DNA of 64,000 nt, taken from Pelomyxa schiedti (Eukaryota; Protista; Evosea). Positions 11,321 to 34,718 of this stretch are shown here, one piece after another. The DNA lies in NCBI GenBank assembly GCA_020536535.1, contig JAHLWZ010000871.1, forward strand, positions 1-64,000. The letters run 5' to 3'. The notes under the pieces were generated by a model. The model made no database searches. It was not told the DNA's origin and was given only the letters and a program-made list of their open reading frames with translations. Numbering within the stretch: position 1 is the stretch's first letter; each line of letters begins with the position of its first letter. A program made the position numbers and the translations under genes.

Positions 11321-14300
11321 ATGCTACGGCTAGGGTTCCACCAGCAGATTCTTCGACACTTGTTACCAACAAATGTGTGCGTAGTAGACACCATTCCCAG
11401 ATCTCCCACATCTGCCGCCTCTGGCGATAATGACGACGACTGCGTTGTCGTAGATCCGCACCCACACTCCAGCACCGACACCACCTCCACTTCTACGATG
11501 TGTTGCGATTCCGGCGACTTTGGCACTCGCAATGCCTCTACCACCTCGTCCTCGGCATATTCACTCCAAACCGATGTTGAAGGAGAAGGGGAAGATGACT
11601 GGGGAAATTGCTTGCTGGTTGTTGGCAGAGGATTGAGGTGCGATAGGGTAGTGGCTTCCTTTTTGCGAATTTGTGCTGATCAGCACTCTGCTATTCATCG
11701 GCGCCCTAGTGTGAGTATGACCAGTGCATCCGGCGCAAGCTCAAGCCCCATCATTCCTGCGGACGTGGTTGTGGGACAAACGACGCCACCAACTGCCAGT
11801 GCTTTGGCGACACCCCAACAAAATGCGACGTCGTCGTCCCCTGTTTTGGGTGATTCACCTCTGCTTCCAATTGCAGATAGCATGACAGGACGCGGCCTTG
11901 TGTTCGTGCTGGGTGTCAAGAAGTATGAACAGCTTTTCCTGGTGGAGGATTGTGCTAGAGCGGCGGCGTACCCTCTACCTGGTGTCTTGGATTACTTGCC
12001 AAATGAGAGAAGCGGAAAAACACTCCTTCCCGTAATTGTTGACTCAGAGACTTCTCCTGCTGAGAGGTATTTCCTTTTGTTTGGTGATTTCTGTGAATGA
12101 TTCCCAAGTCTGGTGAAGAGCTACCATGTACTCCCATGGAGGGGTATTTATAGTTTCTAATCGAATTCTCATTGTGGATTTGCTGAGTAAAAAATTACCC
12201 ACCAATTGGGTTACTGGTTTTGTTGTACTCAATGCTGAGAGGTTATTTCTTTAACAGCCTCAACCATCATATAATGCTCCTAAGGATCGCCACCGACTCT
12301 AGTGAAGCATTCATCTTGAGATACTACAGACAACACAACAAAGTTGGCTTCATAAGCGCATTTTCTGAAGCGGCCAACACATTGAGAGGTGGGTTTGCCA
12401 AAGTGGAAAAACTGATGAGGTTATTATTTGTGAAGAAGCTCTACCTCTGGCCAAGGTGTTAGAATTTGTGTACCTGGAACCTCTCACAAAGCATAATCTC
12501 AGGTTTCGAGTTGAAGTGCAATCAGATTTAGATAGTCACACACCTCAAGTGTTTAACATAAATATCCCTCTTACTGAGTCTATGAAGAAGATACAAACAT
12601 CGTTACTTGGAGTCATTAAAGCTTGTATTAAGGAGTTGGCCCAAAGTCATCATGTAACAATAAGCATACTTTTGAGGCAGTTAAATACCTTTGCTTCAGC
12701 TTGATGATGAAACGAATGTTGAAAATACTCTATTTGCTGGATTTACACAGCATCTCCATGCTCAACTTGACACTATGTGGGGAAAACTTAGCTCAAAAGC
12801 GAAGCAGCTTCTTGGCGACTTGATAGCACTCCATAAACTCCTTACTCACCACCTTCTGCATTCAAATTGCGTCGACTTCTTGGACTACCTTGAAACACTA
12901 AGGACAACACAATTCTCTGCCGAGTCAGGCTGGGTATTCCTTGAGCAGGCCAATACACTATTTGCAGTAAGTAATCTGCCAAACGGATTGTTTCAATTCC
13001 CACTCTCGATAGGAAGCAAGAAAACGTGTCTACTTAAAGAACTCTGCAGCAGAAGTAGTAGAAGTTCTGGAAGAAAATCCAAAATGGGAGATCCTGAAAC
13101 AAGTATTAACTGAGATTATTCAGACCAGTACCGGAACACAGAGTAAATTCTTTAATTTACTAAGTTGCTAAGTTGCCTTGTGATGATTGTTGTAAAGTCA
13201 TTGGTTTAAGTATGAGTGATCTTAATGGTCACAATGACAAAAACCCTTACTCATCTGAAGGCGAATATCAAATCTGATAATTTTTTTCCAAAGCACTTAT
13301 ATATTAAGATACTAGTCAACAAGGATGCATTCTGGTTCTAGTGAACGACGAGCGTACCTGTTACAGTCTCCAGAAATGCCTGCACTTAGGTGCCAAAGGT
13401 TACCTACAGGAAGCTTACAAGCACTACCTTCATAATAAAGAAAATCGAAGCTCTCTCGTAAAAAGTACCTTTGGCGTGTAATGTAAGATTGGATACTCAA
13501 CTATTCTTATTGCACAGCTCCCAACCTCCAATACCAAGATAAGTGGTATAAGCACAAGCCAAAGCCTGCAAAGACTGTAAAAACTGCAAAACAGAATTCA
13601 AAGGAACTTTCCAGTGGGTCTGCTAAAAAGACCCCAAGCAAAAGGCCTCCTGCCAGTAAGGTTAAAAAAACACCAGCATCCAAAAAACCGGCAGGAAAGA
13701 GAAGGAGAAAATCTGATCCCCTCACCATACCTCCTCAAACTGGTAGAGCCATTGAAGTCATCACCTCAACATCGACCAATACTACTGCCACCACATCAAT
13801 GAGTACTCATAGTTCACCCCTTGCAACCCACATTCCTGCAGACACCTCTACATCAACAAGCCCAACAGCCCAGACCTCACTTAAAGCACTTAAATCAGAC
13901 TCTGCTCCAGTCGGCAATGATTTGGACTATGTATGGAACTTTAGTTCTGAATTTGGCATCGTGACACCCCCATATGTACTTATACACCCAATGTGGGAGT
14001 GTGGCCGCTTATTGGATGAACTCAAACCCAACTACATTGTTCTCTATGACCCTGATGTCTCTCTGGTCAGGCAAATTGAGGTTTTTTTGAATTTACACCC
14101 GATTTTTCACTAAGTTTTCTGCACAAGATCTTTAAGGCTGAGAATGTTGGGACTCCTGTAAGTGTTTATTTCATGTGTTATGAGGTACTTGCGGGTACAC
14201 ACTTTTCCTGCATTCTAAGAGAGGGTAGGACTCGGTTGAGAAGCAAAAGTATATGACTTCACTGAAAAAAGAGGCCGAATCATTTGAAGCACTCATCAAA

Positions 14301-15472
14301 GAGAAAGCAGTACACAACAAACTTTTAGTATTTTCCTTGTGATATTGGTTTTAGACTATGATCATACCGGCAGACCGAGATGGTTGCTCTACAATAGCGG
14401 TGGACGATCCCGCCATTGCTAGAATCGTACAGCCACCACAGTACAACCAAAGGCATGGAGGAAAACTTCTTATTACCCCATCGTCAGACCGGAAGGTGAA
14501 ACTTCAAGCTCCCTTGAGATTGCAAACATTTTTGTTCTAGGTTATTGTAGATCTACGGGAGTTTCGGAGTAGTTTGCCATCTATGCTTCATGCAAGAGGA
14601 ATGACGGTAATACCAGGTAGTTTGTTATTACGAGTCGAAAAACGTCTAATTTTCCCCAGCCCACCTGGAGGTTGGGGACTACATTCTTTCTCCAAGTCTT
14701 TGTGTTGAGCGAAAGAGTCTCTCTGACTTGATTGGTTCCTTTAAATCTGGCCGATTGTAAACCATATGTCTGTCCTACTGTAAACTAATTGTTTTGGGAA
14801 GATACACTCAGGTTGAGTCAATGTGCCGAATGTATACCAATCCCCTCCTTCTTATTGAGTGGAGCACTTCGGAGGAATTTCGGTTGCAGGTAGTTATAAC
14901 AAATTGAATAACTTTGAGACCGGTTTTCAGGCAGAAGACAAATCTGATACTGTACAACCAACAAGCGTAACAAGCAAGGTATCTCTCCCTGCCTTTTTTT
15001 TTGTATACTATGATGACATTTTCAAAGTTGACAGTTCTTACTATGCATTTCCCTAAATTGAGGCTTATATGGTCACAGAATCCACAAATTTCCGCAGAAA
15101 TATTTGATTCCATGAAGGTGACGCTGACTGTTCACTTATCCCTTAATTCTTTAATGTACTTGAAATTAGGATGGGCAACCAGAACCCGATCTTGCTGGTA
15201 TAAAAACCTCGGAAAGTGCTGAAGTGGAAGGCGGGGTCACATTTGAAGCAAGAGAATTCTTGTCTAGACTACCATTTGTAAGGGAAAAGAACGTGCAGGT
15301 ACTACTTGCCCCGGCAACCGGAAATACAGACAACACCACACCCACCTCAACAAATAATGACCTCTCACTCCTCAAAATATGCAACATGTCACCACAAGAA
15401 CTTGAGCAACTCCTCCTCATTGGGCCGACTGCAGCCTCCCAGCTTCACGAATTTATCCATCACTCCCTCTGA
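11321..15472 (+). CDS. ERCC4: DNA repair endonuclease XPF (ERCC4/Rad1)
   Basis: [78 protein letters not shown]...[28 protein letters not shown]-terminal HhH region. Confidence 0.96.
13173..13264 (+). ncRNA. Intronic box C/D guide RNA, predicted dual guide for U12 snRNA 2'-O-methylation
   Basis: In the unusually long XPF intron 13143-13308: terminal stem TTGCCT/AGGCGA, box C GTGATGA 13180-13186, D' ATGA 13212-13215, C' ATGACAA 13234-13240, box D CTGA 13255-13258; both antisense elements complement the U12 5' end. Confidence 0.85.
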
Positions 15473-15543: not shown

Positions 15544-18500
15544 CTACACTTTATTCAACAACAAACATACACCCTGGAGTATCCAAATACTGGGGTGTGT
15601 TGAGGTAGGCAGGTTTGCTTCAAACACCAGGCCCTCACCAGACTTGTTTCTTCTGGATTGATTTACATAGACTGGGGTCTGTAGAGTTCCGCGGGTGTGT
15701 CTGTGGCGTTTTTGTGTTGGAATGATGTGAATTACAGGCATGTCAGTCACTGGGTTGCCTTTCCTGGAGAGTTGGTTTGGTTGGGATGTGTTTAGTTTGT
15801 TTAGAAGGTTACTGTTGGAATGCAAGGCAGCAGTGGACCAGGTCCCAGGATGCACCTTCAAGACAGAGGCCGTGGATGTAACAGCCTACTGTGGGGGGGT
15901 CGCGGATTGATGCAGGGTCCACAATGTTGGTTACCTTTGGAAGTAGTTAGAATAGCTGGGAAATGAGGGAGGGTGCGAGAACCTGGCATTCAAGGTAGGT
16001 TTGATCTAGAGGCCAGGACATTTGCCTTGCGGTAGTTTGGAGTACAGATGTTAGATAGGCCTCGGGTACATGCAGACCTGCCAGCCACATGACTTTCGGT
16101 TCAGCCTGTATCCAGGATAGATACTGCTTATGCCGCCGTTTGAAATGAACCTGGGGATTTGTCATTCCGGGTGGCCGAAGCGGTTATGTCCACTTACCAA
16201 CCAATCAGGTAAACTGCTTAATGTAGATGGAGCCAGTGCTTGCCAGATTGATGGAACAGAGCCAATGAAGAGGCTGAAGAACATTGCTTCCAATTCTCTA
16301 TCCATTTGCTGATCTCCTGCAAGCGCTCTTTCCAATTTTTCAAGTGACTACGAATTCTTAGAGCAAAACAGTATTGTAGGATTATACTTTCTTCATGCAT
16401 GTTATGAGACAATTCCAGTACTCCAACTCTTGCAAAAGTACTACTTGAGCTGGAGAGAGGATTCCTTGCTCAGTGGGCGTTCCCAAACGTAGTGCCTTTT
16501 CTATCGAAGCAATATCGAAAGGTTTGGGTACTTCTGCAGCTATCTCCTTTAATAGACTTTTAACCACAGTCTCTTGTGTATCGCTATTGTGTGTTGCTCC
16601 TCCGAGACGGGGTTGCATTTCCAGCAGACTGGACCACATCTAATAGAGGAAAAGTTTGAATTTTGTACTGGAACGAATGTTATACTTGTTTCACAGCGTT
16701 TTTGTGATATGCCAGATCGGCATTTTGATGCAGTCCAACAACAGAAGGGCTGGTAACGAGGGAGAGAGAACTGATCGACTCCATGAGGGCAGAAAAATCG
16801 CCGGTTGGTAAGCTGTATGCTTCGCCTCCAGTAGAAAAGAAGTGGAAAGGCTGGAAGGAATCGAAAAGGAAATCGCCCATATACTCTTCGAGGTAAGTCT
16901 TTAGTACTCGACGATCATAACTGTCAGTTACGCGACCCCCATACACAACGTCACCAATAAGATAGTGCAAGGCCTCCCATGGAACACTTTTTTTCCGTGC
17001 CTGATGTATTGTTGGGTATCGATTAGCTTAACAAAAACATTCAATAAATTGCACACCAGGTGGACTTGCGAAAGTTGGGAGGACATTACGGAACAAGATA
17101 CATTGAAATCAGACTCATTAAAATCATAGTGTAAATTCCAGCCAATGGAGCCATATTTCTGACGCTCTTGTACAACGGAATGGAAAAATGCCAGCACATA
17201 CACTAGCTGGAGATACTGTGGATGTGGACACAACTTAGCCTCTGGAGTCAATTTGTAAAATAGGTTCCGCATGTTCAATGAGAGTCCACTAGGAGGCTCT
17301 GTTACAACCTGCGGGGAAAAAACACAGTCAATATGTGGCATGTAGGGAAAGCCAACCTTCAGTGATCGCTGTAGAATTCCAATAGGAAATGACGGAGTGG
17401 GTTCAGTTGTAAGCCACAGCCGGAAGTTTTCGTGTGGGTGCTCAAGCTTAGCCAAAATTTTATTGAGCACAGGAAGCCAACTGGGTAAAAGGTGGCAGTT
17501 TTGTAATACAACCCAATTGCCTTGACTTATTGCAATTTCTAAAAGCTTGGCCGCGGGATTTCCTTGATCTTGGCCCAGTGCAAATGGCTGTAGCGAAAAA
17601 TAAGATGACGAAGAATGATTGAGAACTACTTTGACTTTCGAACTTAAACCCAAACTTTCCCCAAGCTTGAAAATGTCACTCAGTGGGTCAGATCCAGGGC
17701 TCAGTACACATATCACAGGAGTGGTGGGTGAACTTTGGGTAAAGATAAATTGGAATGATGTAGCAGGGGGCTGTAACAAATGGTCAAAGAGGACAAAAAT
17801 TAATGGGTTTTGCCTGAACAAACTTCTCTCCAAGTTCTGTGACAATAAAGTTTCTCATAACAAACCAGACCCTATCAATACGGAAAGTTCTAACCAGAAG
17901 CAGCATGTAAAATTGATATTTGTGAGGGATATCTTCAAGAGATAACGTGCCAATAGAGAACGGAGGGCAGCTGTCCTCTGGTCTCTCCAGGCCAAGCCAC
18001 AATTTCCATCCTGACTCATCTTTTTGTATTTGCTGAACAATATCACGGAAGTCATTTGATAATGTTGATAAGTAAAAAAGATCACGATAAATCTGATCAG
18101 AGAGCCAAATGAAAGGCTTCCCAGCACCACTTCCAAGATTTGGATTTCCCCGAAGGAAAAAATCCAGCAATGGCTGCTCAATCAAGCCCTCCCCCTAAGG
18201 GTTGTTACATTAGATCAGAATTGTTCCTTGTCATGGTTTTTTTGTGGGGTCACCTTCAGAATCCCAATGCAAATTTGAAAGGCAAAGGTGAGTTTATCCT
18301 TTTCGAAAAGACTCATGCAAGTCCAAGTATAGACCTGCCCGGTAAGTGTACTTACTATCCCTTCCAAGCGCTGTTGGAGGTTGGTTTCCTTCTCAATTGC
18401 TGCCACTCCTGAAGGAGGCAACAACTTACCACTTTGATTCAAACTTGATTTATAGATCTTTGAAAAATGAGTGGCAAATTAGAATGTCTGTAGTACCTCA

Positions 18501-24500: not shown

Positions 24501-27500
24501 AACTTGCTCTGGGACTACTTGGTAGTTCTTTTCTTTTAGAACATCTTCAACATGTTCTCGAAAAGTTTTTTGCAACTCTACAACTTGTGTGACACCAGGA
24601 AATATGTCATTCAAGATTCCCTATACGTTGGTAAGAAGTTGTGTACCTGTGTTTTACACAAACCTGAAAGATGGAAATGTCAGAGAACACAAACTTTGGG
24701 AGGTTCATGCCTCTTATGGCTTTTATCATCACTACATCTTCCTCTTGGGAAGGACACCTGCCAGTGGAAAACTGATGAGTCAAAATCTCTTTAGAAGAGG
24801 AGAAAGAAAAGGTAGCCACCCCCTCTTCAGATTTCCTGCCATCATTAGAGCAGATTTGAGTGCACGCAATCCCCAGTCATAATGTTTTTGTTTTGTCAAT
24901 TGCTGTTTGGCTAACTCATAAAGTGCACAAATTTTTTTAGCAAGAGTCCTGGCACTAGAAAACCCGAAGCTGAATAACATAACCTCAGCAATAAGTTCCA
25001 TATCAGGAACGGCCATAACAACAGGTCTAAACAATGCCTGTGCTTGTTATAACTTAGCAACCTAGTCATGTTCACACCTTTAGGTTATCTGGCAACTCAG
25101 TCCGGCCTGAATATGTTGGATTCGAGGTGACAAAGATCTAATTGGTTGGTGGGAACTCATAGATGCCACAAAACATACTCCACATTTGCTATCTAGATTG
25201 AGCTCTTTGCCAAAAAATTGAAATTTTGTTTGAGAAGCTCTCAAGGCTTGTTGAATAGTGCTGACTTGAATTGATATCACAGAGAGTACCTATTGGTGCA
25301 TTACAAGTGAGCTGCTTCAGGAATATTACTACCTCCGGTTTTATGCGATTGAATTCGTCAAAGCAGGCCCACCCACCACACTGTACCAGACCAGAAAGTA
25401 GACGGGCAGTAGTGGAGTAATCAACCCCTTCACCACAGTTGTAAACCTTGCACAAAAGACCCAATGACTTAGCCAAATCCTTCACAGTTTCCTTTAATAA
25501 AGTGGTGAGGCCATGGTCAAATCAGGGTGTGCACACAGTCTTGCCAGTTCCAGCAGGCCCAGCAGGAGCACCTCCAAGTTTATGGGTGTGCGCTTGTGTC
25601 AAAGTCAAAATACACCTCTCTGTGAGTGGGGTAATAACCAATCTACCACTCAACCCAAGATACTCATATCCATAATGGAATACACCAGAACACTGTTGGA
25701 TTACAACATCTTCGACAGAAGTATCCCTGTATGGAAATTAAACTGGTGGTGATGGAAGAATTAAACCAGTAAAATCGCAGCTGGCTTTCCCACTCGAACT
25801 GACTAAGTGAGAAGATGCTACCTCGAACCAAGGATTCCACGACATCCTCTTGGTGAACGCCAATGATAATCAATGAATTTATAATGCTTCTTGTTATGGG
25901 GGGAAGATCCTGGCGGACCAAACCAACAAGAAACTGGAGGTGATCATGCATTCTATTACTGAGCTTTTTGAATGCGTTCTTATCAGAGCTGAGCTAAATT
26001 TGATCTGTTAGTAATTTTCACAGCTTGAACAAAGAACTTGGTGAAAAGTATCTTCAGTATTCCACGTCCACCATATTTGGGCAGCAACGAGGATGGACAT
26101 AGCGGGGAAAGACCCGATCCAGGAAGAAAAAGGCATAGTAGCATGGTAGAATACTGTTTCTTTTGTTAAAGCACGCAGAGTCTACTAATTGTGAAATAGG
26201 TTGAGAGTTCCATGTTAACATGTTACATATTTCATTTCTGATTCCACAGATTGCATCCACACTTCAACTGGACCCCCTAACGGGAATTGTCTACGAAATT
26301 TTACTTGTTCACACTCTGAAGATATCATGCCTGCTACAATTTTTGATTGCTGTGTACTGTTAACCCTAATATGTGAAATAAGTACAGACAAAAAAAGGGT
26401 TAATATTTACACAAGAGTTTGTATATTCCCAAATAATTGAATCATATGTGTCTGTAGTGCACTTAGATCAGAGCTTCCCAGGATTGCCAGTAGTTCATCA
26501 TCACTAATGAAATAAAATCTTGAAAAAGCTTGACGCTTTGTCTCAAGGTATTCAGACAGTGCACACTGGCAAGTTTGGAGGGAAACATGCAAATTTTTCA
26601 GTAGCTCAGCACGCCCTGAGTCTTGGCATGCCTGAGGTCATAATGAGTGTTTTCTGAAAATGAAAAGCCTGTGTACCTGAAGAACGAGAGTGTTAGAACC
26701 AATTTCAGACATCATTGTTTTAAATGTCTTGTCGATGTAGCTGAATTGCTCTGACTCCACTGGAAGCCTTTCCCGAATATCCTCATTTGAAAGGAATATA
26801 TTTTCCAGGTACAGCCATTTCTTTTGCACAATCATCCACTCTTGGGTAACCTTGGATTGCATTGGCATCAGCAAATTTTGGAGAATGAAATAACCTCTTC
26901 CACCAGTGCTAATTGCTTTTCCCATTTTTGGATTTTTTCTAAAAAGGAAGAAGCATAGCGAGAAACAGCCATTGCTTGTAATGTCATCTGGTTATCTTCA
27001 ATCAGGGACTGAATGTCATCAATTCCCTTTAATAGCAGATTTGTCTTCTCTCCATTGGTGAGCTTTATAAGTTCAAACTGCATTGTCTTCCACGAAGTGG
27101 AAATTGACTGAAGAGTCTTTCCAAATGAGTCTTCATGATTGGCAGTCTCAACCACATCAGAGATTCTTTCTGTAAACTGTTCCAAGTCCAACGATAGAAC
27201 CGTACCAAGTGTAAACTCATCATTGGTATGCAAGAAGAGGTAACCAGTGATCTTTTATGTACACATCAAGTTAATACGGGGACAAAATGGGGATGACAGG
27301 CCTCTTTAATTTTGTCCCAATGCCTTGGTTGTAGGGAGTCACTTTTCAACCATTTCAAAAGTGAAACCGATTCCCTAAAAGTATTAATTCGTTGTACCAG
27401 CAGTTTTGACGGGTATATGGACTGCAGGGGCTTGGGGAGTCTATTGGTTTTGTTGATGAACCCATCAATTCCACCAACAAGGACATCAATATCTACTTTA

Positions 27501-33559: not shown

Positions 33560-34718
33560 AGGTGCTAACCAAAACTTCCTGGTGGAGACGTCACTATTTG
33601 ACGAACCCATGTGCCGGAATTGGACCTTGCTCAGACCACTTTTCCAAGGGTTATTATTGTCCAAGAGGACACAGGGCAAATGCGCACACTACAGCAACTT
33701 CATCACAACCTAATTTGTGCTGGTTATCACCACTCAACCGGTCACAGTCTCTGGTTTGCTAGAAGACACATACGACGTGCGATGTGATCTACATAAATGA
33801 CACAACAAAACCAGTGAGGACAGGGAGATTCCTTCCGGGTTGCACATCTTCAAACGCCTTTGTGGAAGGTGGCCTCCTGTTCCAAATGAGCGCCTACAAC
33901 AAGAAAATGCATGTGACTGAGGAGTCCTGGCGCCCACATCCTCACTTTGAAGGATTGGGAAAGGAGTTGATTTTGTGCAATAGATTAAGGAGACTGTCAC
34001 AAGAAAACATTCATTTGGTGGTTTTTTGGGTTGTTGCCTGCTGTGTTGGGTGGTGATGCTGAAAATGGAGAATTCCAGGGATAATTCCCTCCGAATTCCT
34101 GCACGCAATATTGAATCGCCTCCCGAAATTCCTTGTATATACAACATACTCTACAGCATGCACAAGCTTATGGGATGGTGTGGGGTGCCGTTTGGGGTTG
34201 CTTCCAACGAGGACTGGTTGGTGGAATGTTCTGATACAGAATTGTTCATATGGAAAGTTGCGGAAACAGAAGGTGGTGGAGGCAAAAGGGTGTTGGCTCC
34301 GGCATCTGTGTGCCATGTTGATACCGACGGGGATTCGCCATCACAAGGGCTTTTCCTCCATTCTTCCTGCAAAACCATCAAAGAGTTACACAATTCCTTA
34401 TGTGGAGTACAGTTGTGTCTGGGAGTTGTTTGTGCTGGCCACTTCACACTGCTTTAGGCTGGGAACAACTCACAGCACTCACACTGTGCTTCACAACAGG
34501 CTCCTCCTCTCCATCTCCGCGGGTTTGTGTTCATTGAGGTCATATGTCCACTCCCTCAGTTACCAAGGATATTGTCCCTAGGTGGATTCAACTTTATGTA
34601 GTACAGAATCACATTACTGAACAATGTGTACTATGTTACCAAGTTCCTGGAGCCTCATAGTGAAGGTTCCAATTGCTGTTTCTTGTGCTTCCACACAGGA
34701 CAAAGAATGAAGTCATAA
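33560..34718 (+). pseudogene. Degenerate coding-like region of an unknown family
   Basis: Overlapping protein-like fragments in different frames (e.g. VASNEDWLVECSDTELFIWKV) broken by stops; I could not build a clean spliced model. Boundaries approximate. Confidence 0.3.

Follow-up and report, generated by a model that had tools for sequence, protein, structure and literature searches.

An XPF intron of the amoeba Pelomyxa schiedti carries a candidate box C/D RNA with two predicted guides for U12 small nuclear RNA

The amoeba Pelomyxa schiedti (Eukaryota; Evosea) carries, inside an intron of its XPF (ERCC4) gene, a compact putative box C/D RNA, both guides of which are complementary to the 5' region of U12, the small nuclear RNA (snRNA) of the minor spliceosome. 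The RNA, about 92 nt long, occupies positions 13173..13264 on the plus strand of a 64,000-nt stretch analysed here as a whole and referred to as the window (contig JAHLWZ010000871.1, positions 1 to 64,000, assembly GCA_020536535.1). Judged by their register, the predicted targets of the two guides are A8 and G18, the positions that are ribose-methylated in human U12. We estimate at roughly 0.8 the probability that the intron encodes a guide RNA of the box C/D class which is dedicated to U12 snRNA.

Results

A complete box C/D layout

All parts of the layout were re-read directly from the sequence, and all coordinates and sequences agree with those given in an earlier reading of the window (hereafter, the original prediction), in which a stem and C, D', C' and D boxes were proposed for 13173-13264. 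The RNA opens with UUGCCUU (13173..13179), which makes up the 5' side of the terminal stem, and the C box GUGAUGA (13180..13186), and closes with the D box CUGA (13255..13258) and the 3' half of the stem, AAGGCGA (13258..13264), with the host gene on the same, plus strand as all of these elements. The C and D' boxes are separated by a 25-nt spacer, the end of which is taken up by the 13-nt D' guide TCATTGGTTTAAG (13198..13210) and one unpaired T. The D' box, AUGA in place of CUGA (13212..13215), is followed by an internal hairpin, GUGAUC/GGUCAC (13216..13232), in which 13216-13221 and 13227-13232 form 6 bp around a 5-nt loop, and then by a degenerate C' box, AAUGA (13233..13237), which is assigned tentatively; read as a hexamer together with the last base of the hairpin, C13232, it gives CAAUGA (13232-13237), identical to UGAUGA at 4/6 positions. 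The 10-nt D guide CCTTACTCAT (13245..13254) stands before the D box.

The terminal stem, in which 13173-13179 are paired to 13258-13264 over 7 bp, and the internal hairpin are present in both the minimum free energy and the centroid structures, and the fold energy of 13173-13264 is -24.5 kcal/mol, compared with -16.2 on average for shuffled sequences (z = -2.7). Of the features that characterize the class, an RUGAUGA C box near the 5' end, a CUGA D box near the 3' end and a terminal stem are present, and so are antisense elements of at least 10 nt that end 1-2 nt upstream of the D or D' box and whose fifth base faces the predicted target nucleotide. At gathering thresholds, Rfam gave no match over the window, with no family of small nucleolar RNAs (snoRNAs) or scaRNAs (small RNAs specific to Cajal bodies), including SCARNA17 and SCARNA21, recognized; the best candidate of a permissive scan was the generic family snoZ221_snoR21b at 13175-13262, with 19 bits (cut-off 44) and E = 2.7. 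A genome search for SNORD14, chosen as a reference intronic snoRNA, found no match, and a scan of the window for bacterial promoters and terminators, irrelevant here, was likewise negative.

Both guides match the U12 snRNA of the host

The genome search covered 52,367,397 bases in 5,337 contigs; the published single-cell assembly of P. schiedti comprises 52.4 Mb in 5337 scaffolds (PMC8887013). One U12 gene was found at C475:61363-61517 (RF00007, 58.2 bits, cut-off 53) and a second at C859:7899-8035 (RF00007, 41 bits, below cut-off). The 5' 27 nt of the C475 gene are nearly consensus, and its Sm site, AAUUUUUGA, is present. The C859 gene (L002:1501-1637) has the same 5' functional region and promoter element and a much shorter 3' stem-loop, and may represent either a variant or a copy in decay. 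In both genes, nt 5-23 read CTTAAACCAATGAGTAAGG, with 0 mismatches. The original prediction that the host U12 would include CUUAAAC[C/U]AAUGAGUAAGG was thus exact, this 19-mer being found in both genes without a mismatch. Position 12 is C in the host U12, where animals and plants have U. Nucleotides of U12 are numbered according to the Rfam alignment. The +1 position and the numbering are supported by the sequence CCCAYAAT, which lies at -61 to -54 in one U12 gene (U12a) and at identical spacing in a U2 gene.

The D' guide forms Watson-Crick pairs with nt 5-17 of the host U12 throughout (13/13), placing its +5 base, T13207, opposite A8, and the D guide does so with nt 14-23 (10/10), placing its +5 base, C13250, opposite G18; both pairings, registers included, had been anticipated. 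Genome-wide, the 13-mer of the D' guide occurs in four places only: the two U12 genes, the window RNA and C942:34726-34738, which is considered below. An antisense U12 pseudogene was ruled out as the source of these matches, the order of the guides being opposite to that of an antisense copy and boxes lying between them.

Given the base composition of the intron, the expected number of perfect in-register matches to U12 is 2.4e-6 for a 13-mer and 1.5e-4 for a 10-mer, or about 4e-10 per candidate for both guides on U12 in register. Bare C/D layouts, defined as RTGATGA with CTGA 45-140 nt downstream and a stem of at least 4 bp, number 3 in 128 kb (both strands of the window), which extrapolates to ~2,500 genome-wide. 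Multiplying the two figures gives a joint chance of about 1e-6 for the entire genome, and a chance origin of the U12 matches is excluded. The other two bare layouts, 27157-27223 (-) and 24680-24732 (-), which were used as negative controls, have stems of 4-5 bp and no convincing target in rRNA or snRNAs; they are probably due to chance.

A second locus with the A8 guide

The remaining occurrence of the 13-mer belongs to a second C/D-like locus, at about 34674-34815 of C942 (L043:1449-1590:+, or about 1457-1579, on the guide-bearing strand). It consists of GTGATGA, 37 nt, a guide that is 16/16 complementary to U12 nt 5-20, a single T and CTGA, with A8 again at +5. The complementarity reaches 3 nt further into U12 than that of the window D' guide, the three additional paired bases being complementary to U12 as well. 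All that the two loci have in common is a core of 21 nt, TCATTGGTTTAAGT[A/C]TGAGT, and therefore the guide has been kept while the remainder diverged. Since a CTGA occupies the equivalent position in C942, the AUGA of the window RNA is confirmed as the D' box. Another CTGA lies 57 nt downstream in C942, where pairing with the stretch that precedes the C box could give a terminal stem with a bulge. No target for a second guide of this locus was found among the rRNA and snRNAs scanned, and Pfam gave no match for the neighbouring open reading frames (ORFs).

About 900 nt from this locus, at C942 about 33739-33820 (L043:514-595, minus strand), there is a weak SNORD5-like or SNORD38-like candidate, GGUGAUGA ... 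CUGA, which scores below cut-off (21.5 bits, E 5.6).

The host intron

The window RNA lies in a GT..AG intron of 166 nt (13143..13308, +), delimited by the end of an RNA contig, an open frame and flanking exon matches to XPF. The upstream exon (13013..13142, +), which is assigned by its XPF match and by a contig of a single-cell transcriptome (X4 record 6), follows a stretch, 12967-13012, that is spliced out in this RNA; the contig then ends at 13142, its 4 extra letters not being intronic. As judged by arithmetic and sequence reading, the frame is open over 13013-13142 (phase 1), resumes at 13309 and is open across 13142|13309. The downstream exon (13309..13475, +; 3' end approximate) is assigned by the frame that continues from 13142 and by a weak, exclusive match to XPF. 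In searches against PDB sequences, for which the exons were used singly and never joined, the frame of an upstream exon, 12691-12966, matched human XPF residues 251-355 (E 1.9e-11), and the sole match of the exon frame 13311-13478 was human XPF 405-440, weak (E 0.13) and colinear. Ten mechanically defined host-gene ORFs had no match in Pfam, and the identity of the gene comes from the PDB matches instead.

Nine RNA-supported introns of the same gene measure 41-56 nt, with local introns at 40-56 nt, and intron 13143-13308 is accordingly about 3.5 times the local norm, in keeping with its original description as enlarged. Another intron of XPF has two junctions in two RNA runs, 14975->15025 (skipping 49) and 14976->15033 (skipping 56), which indicates alternative or imprecise splice-site use at 14975-15033 (+). 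The 3' part of XPF is abutted by the 3' end of a convergent neighbour gene (15582-16640, -), in which RNA supports four introns of 40-49 nt (CT..AC as read on the plus strand).

The minor spliceosome of P. schiedti

The original prediction held that this amoeba has kept a U12-type spliceosome and proposed a search for the minor snRNAs with Rfam models. Besides U12, the genome search recovered U11 (67.5 bits) and U6atac (62.7 bits), both above the Rfam cut-offs; neither U4atac (RF00618) nor the protein PDCD7/59K (PF16021) was found, a result that is uninformative in a fragmented, intron-rich assembly. With U12, U11, U6atac and U12-type introns in the genome, the claim of retention is upheld, and retention as such had already been published together with a report of 90 minor introns in P. 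schiedti (PMC10639083). The minor spliceosome has been reported as lost in Mastigamoeba balamuthi and Entamoeba (PMC8136499).

The element CCCAYAAT, at about -61 to -52, is common to the U2, U4, U5, U6, U6atac, U11 and U12 genes, and because all snRNA classes share it, the minor snRNA genes are native rather than contamination. It was seen upstream in stretches L001, L002, L006, L014, L028-L030, L032-L035 and L037-L039, and is probably the snRNA promoter (proximal sequence element, PSE) of this amoeba, serving genes of RNA polymerases II and III alike. A U12-type intron motif, RTATCCTT followed after 5-35 nt by TCCTTAAC, has 12 matches in the genome, compared with 1 for the reversed control. 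The motifs are short, the 5' splice-site box and the branch-site box being 24-34 nt apart, and 10/12 start with AT, i.e., they are of the AT-AC (ATATCCTT) type (e.g., L045-L048). Such introns are probably mis-modelled in the published annotation, since it contains only GT-AG, GC-AG and one GT-GG intron. Collectively, these observations establish that the minor spliceosome is native to P. schiedti.

Discussion

Alternatives to a dedicated U12 guide

Several observations weigh against the reading of the window RNA as a guide dedicated to U12, and most of them bear on one or another of its alternatives. The alternative that survives best, to which we nevertheless give only a small share of the probability, is that of a real C/D RNA in which the D' guide (A8) alone works, the match of the D guide being non-functional, a relic or meant for another target. 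At 10 bp, the D guide is at the lower limit for a functioning guide, the C942 locus keeps just the A8 guide, and strict pattern searches for more G18 guides and for a G22 guide returned chance-level counts, none with a C box. The D guide nonetheless finds a perfect in-register 10-mer on the same 155-nt U12 that its partner matches, against the chance expectation of 1.5e-4 calculated above, and the nucleotide selected is homologous to one whose ribose methylation is known in human.

It is considerably less probable that the RNA is a conventional snoRNA active in rRNA modification, or guides yet another RNA, and that its complementarity to U12 is incidental. The in-register target scan covered the small subunit (SSU) rRNA, the whole contig C544, which carries ribosomal DNA (rDNA) with 5.8S and all large subunit (LSU) pieces, and the snRNAs U2, U4, U5, U6, U6atac, U11 and U12; U1, 5S rRNA, U4atac, tRNAs and mRNAs were outside the set. 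C544 was scanned on both strands because its LSU assembly is jumbled, for which reason the target set may also be imperfect. Within this set, U12 is the sole 13-pair Watson-Crick match of the D' guide, the next best match, and the best in rRNA, having 7 Watson-Crick pairs, and U12 is the best match of the D guide that is free of gaps and GU pairs. The D guide can also form 14 bp (12 Watson-Crick and 2 GU) with GGGTAGGGGTTTTT on C544, but this site is opposite in strand to every LSU model match around it and is thus antisense to LSU rRNA; with 2 GU pairs needed in addition, it was rejected as a target. The check for better rRNA or snRNA targets, suggested together with the original prediction, accordingly found none on the sense strand of the assembled set. 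That the two guides together span 19 adjoining nt of U12, and that the C942 paralogue lengthens the complementarity to U12, also argue against incidental pairing.

A search with LSU families found only an 80-nt fragment on C571 (12722-12801, -), a lone match to LSU model positions 24-103 (86.8 bits) inside a 78-kb contig and far from the rDNA; the real LSU was found on C544 through its sarcin-ricin loop. In C544 (L025-L027), the LSU pieces are jumbled, with inverted duplications and two sarcin-ricin loops that face each other (9503, 11563), probably as a result of chimeric amplification or an assembly artefact. The SSU rRNA gene (C59:18787-23349) measures 4.5 kb and lies on a contig other than that of the LSU, with no LSU downstream.

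Equally improbable, in our judgement, is that no stable RNA is made and that the intron only contains C/D-like motifs, by chance or as remnants of a decayed snoRNA. The available RNA runs consist of poly(A)-type single-cell contigs, none of which spans 13143-13970, so that the intron is without coverage; in addition, Rfam scores stay below cut-off for all families, and the C' box is degenerate. Against this reading stand the intact boxes, terminal stem and internal hairpin, the size of the intron at 3.5 times the local one, and the joint chance of about 1e-6, while 23/23 perfect guide positions are not what a decayed gene would retain. Least probable of all is that the pairing serves mostly to chaperone or clamp nt 5-23 of U12 in an antisense manner, e.g., in snRNP (small nuclear ribonucleoprotein) maturation, rather than to guide methylation: the guides jointly cover the whole functional 5' region, overlapping at nt 14-17, and C/D RNAs with non-methylating roles are known (U3, U14), but each duplex sets exactly at +5 a nucleotide whose human U12 equivalent is methylated, a register for which a clamp has no need.

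A further point against a dedicated U12 guide is that the D' box departs from CUGA, and others concern the supporting evidence. The C942 locus is less canonical than the window RNA, since a clear C' box is missing and the fold is not significant (z = +0.5), and its orientation relative to a host gene was not settled by counting splice signals, a procedure that failed in calibration on XPF. A metagenome scan for TGATGA...A8-guide...NTGA produced 19 matches, all unrelated and mostly coding, which fall into a protein-coding family of marine origin, a group from the rumen and singletons. Finally, Am8 and Gm18, i.e., the ribose-methylated forms of A8 and G18, are predicted for Pelomyxa U12 from sequence only. 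Weighed together, the evidence favours an intronic guide RNA with both A8 and G18 of U12 as its predicted targets.

Proposed mode of action

Expression of the RNA, its processing and its assembly into a ribonucleoprotein are predicted here on the strength of its sequence organization. The guide RNA would be transcribed within the XPF pre-mRNA, and once the intron has been spliced out, its debranching and trimming by exonucleases would set the RNA free. Protection would come from the core proteins Snu13, Nop56, Nop58 and fibrillarin, together with the terminal stem and the C/D kink-turn. The guides would then engage the 5' region of U12 one after the other, D' on nt 5-17 and D on nt 14-23; since the two duplexes overlap at nt 14-17, they cannot coexist on one U12 molecule. 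Fibrillarin would methylate the 2'-OH opposite the fifth guide base upstream of each box, giving Am8 and Gm18. Both nucleotides are within stem-loop I of U12, which adjoins the sequence that recognizes the branch site.

Relation to known guides

Human U12 carries Am8, Gm18, Gm22 and the pseudouridines psi19 and psi28, and the ribose-methylated sites named in the original prediction (Am8, Gm18 and Gm22) agree with a review table (PMC7960923). In the same 2021 review, a C/D guide is listed only for Gm22 (scaRNA17), the entries for Am8 and Gm18 being blank (PMC7960923). For the D' element of the elongated SCARNA21, which combines C/D and H/ACA parts, Jorjani et al. predicted in 2016 pairing on the U12 residue beside psi19, which is G18 (PMC4914119). 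In Arabidopsis, C/D snoRNAs that co-precipitate with fibrillarin (FIB2) include some with predicted targets in U12 and U6atac (PMC8583080).

The window RNA differs from the human guides. Human scaRNA17 (mgU12-22/U4-8) aims at G22 of U12, not at A8 or G18, and its second guide serves U4. It was reportedly described by Tycowski et al. in 2004 as a longer, capped and independently transcribed RNA with a double C/D domain. No sequence similarity between scaRNA17 and the Pelomyxa RNA was detected by Rfam. Human elongated SCARNA21 is closer in its predicted G18 guide and is regarded as dedicated to the minor spliceosome; it is, however, a composite RNA, which also serves in the pseudouridylation of U12 and U6atac and whose other C/D guide has a predicted target in 28S rRNA (PMC4914119). 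In contrast, the Pelomyxa RNA is predicted to be a simple C/D RNA of 92 nt in which both guides are directed at U12.

In the major spliceosome, U2 takes the place of U12, and both RNAs read the branch site. Two guides on the 5' functional region of a single snRNA are likewise found in human scaRNA2 (mgU2-25/61) and scaRNA9 (mgU2-19/30), which differ from the Pelomyxa RNA in that they target U2 rather than U12 and are vertebrate, much longer and in part independently transcribed (PMC7960923, PMC2811027). The FIB2-associated snoRNAs of Arabidopsis resemble the Pelomyxa RNA in being ordinary C/D snoRNAs of a non-animal eukaryote with predicted antisense elements to minor snRNAs (PMC8583080).

No GU-repeat tract of the type that serves as a Cajal-body signal in animals is present in 13173-13264. 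That signal, a wobble stem of long GU/UG repeats, is defined only for animals. As an animal-type signal is lacking, we refer to the RNA as a U12-directed C/D guide and not as a scaRNA. Its kind is already known, given scaRNA17 and SCARNA21 in human and the predictions of U12-targeting snoRNAs in Arabidopsis. What is new is the putative amoebozoan member, its compact form with both predicted guides on U12, an explicit candidate guide for Am8 and a second locus with the A8 guide.

Implications

We regard the chances as about even that the Pelomyxa RNA would be the first guide identified in any organism for Am8 of U12, and that the methylation pattern of the U12 branch-site region would be at least as old as the common ancestor of Amoebozoa and animals, installed here by one RNA dedicated to the minor spliceosome and backed by a second A8-guide locus. 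We know of no established function for the modifications of U12, itself a rare RNA. That a simple C/D RNA of a protist appears to be aimed at both A8 and G18 suggests that these modifications are ancient and under selection. The Pelomyxa guide also provides a search image for the missing Am8 guide in other eukaryotes, namely a sequence antisense to U12 nt 5-17 that is followed by a D or D' box. At the level of RNA genes, the findings confirm that Pelomyxa keeps a minor spliceosome, the loss of which has been reported for the related Mastigamoeba and Entamoeba, and the candidate guide RNA may offer a small, genetically separable handle on what the ribose methylation of U12 does.

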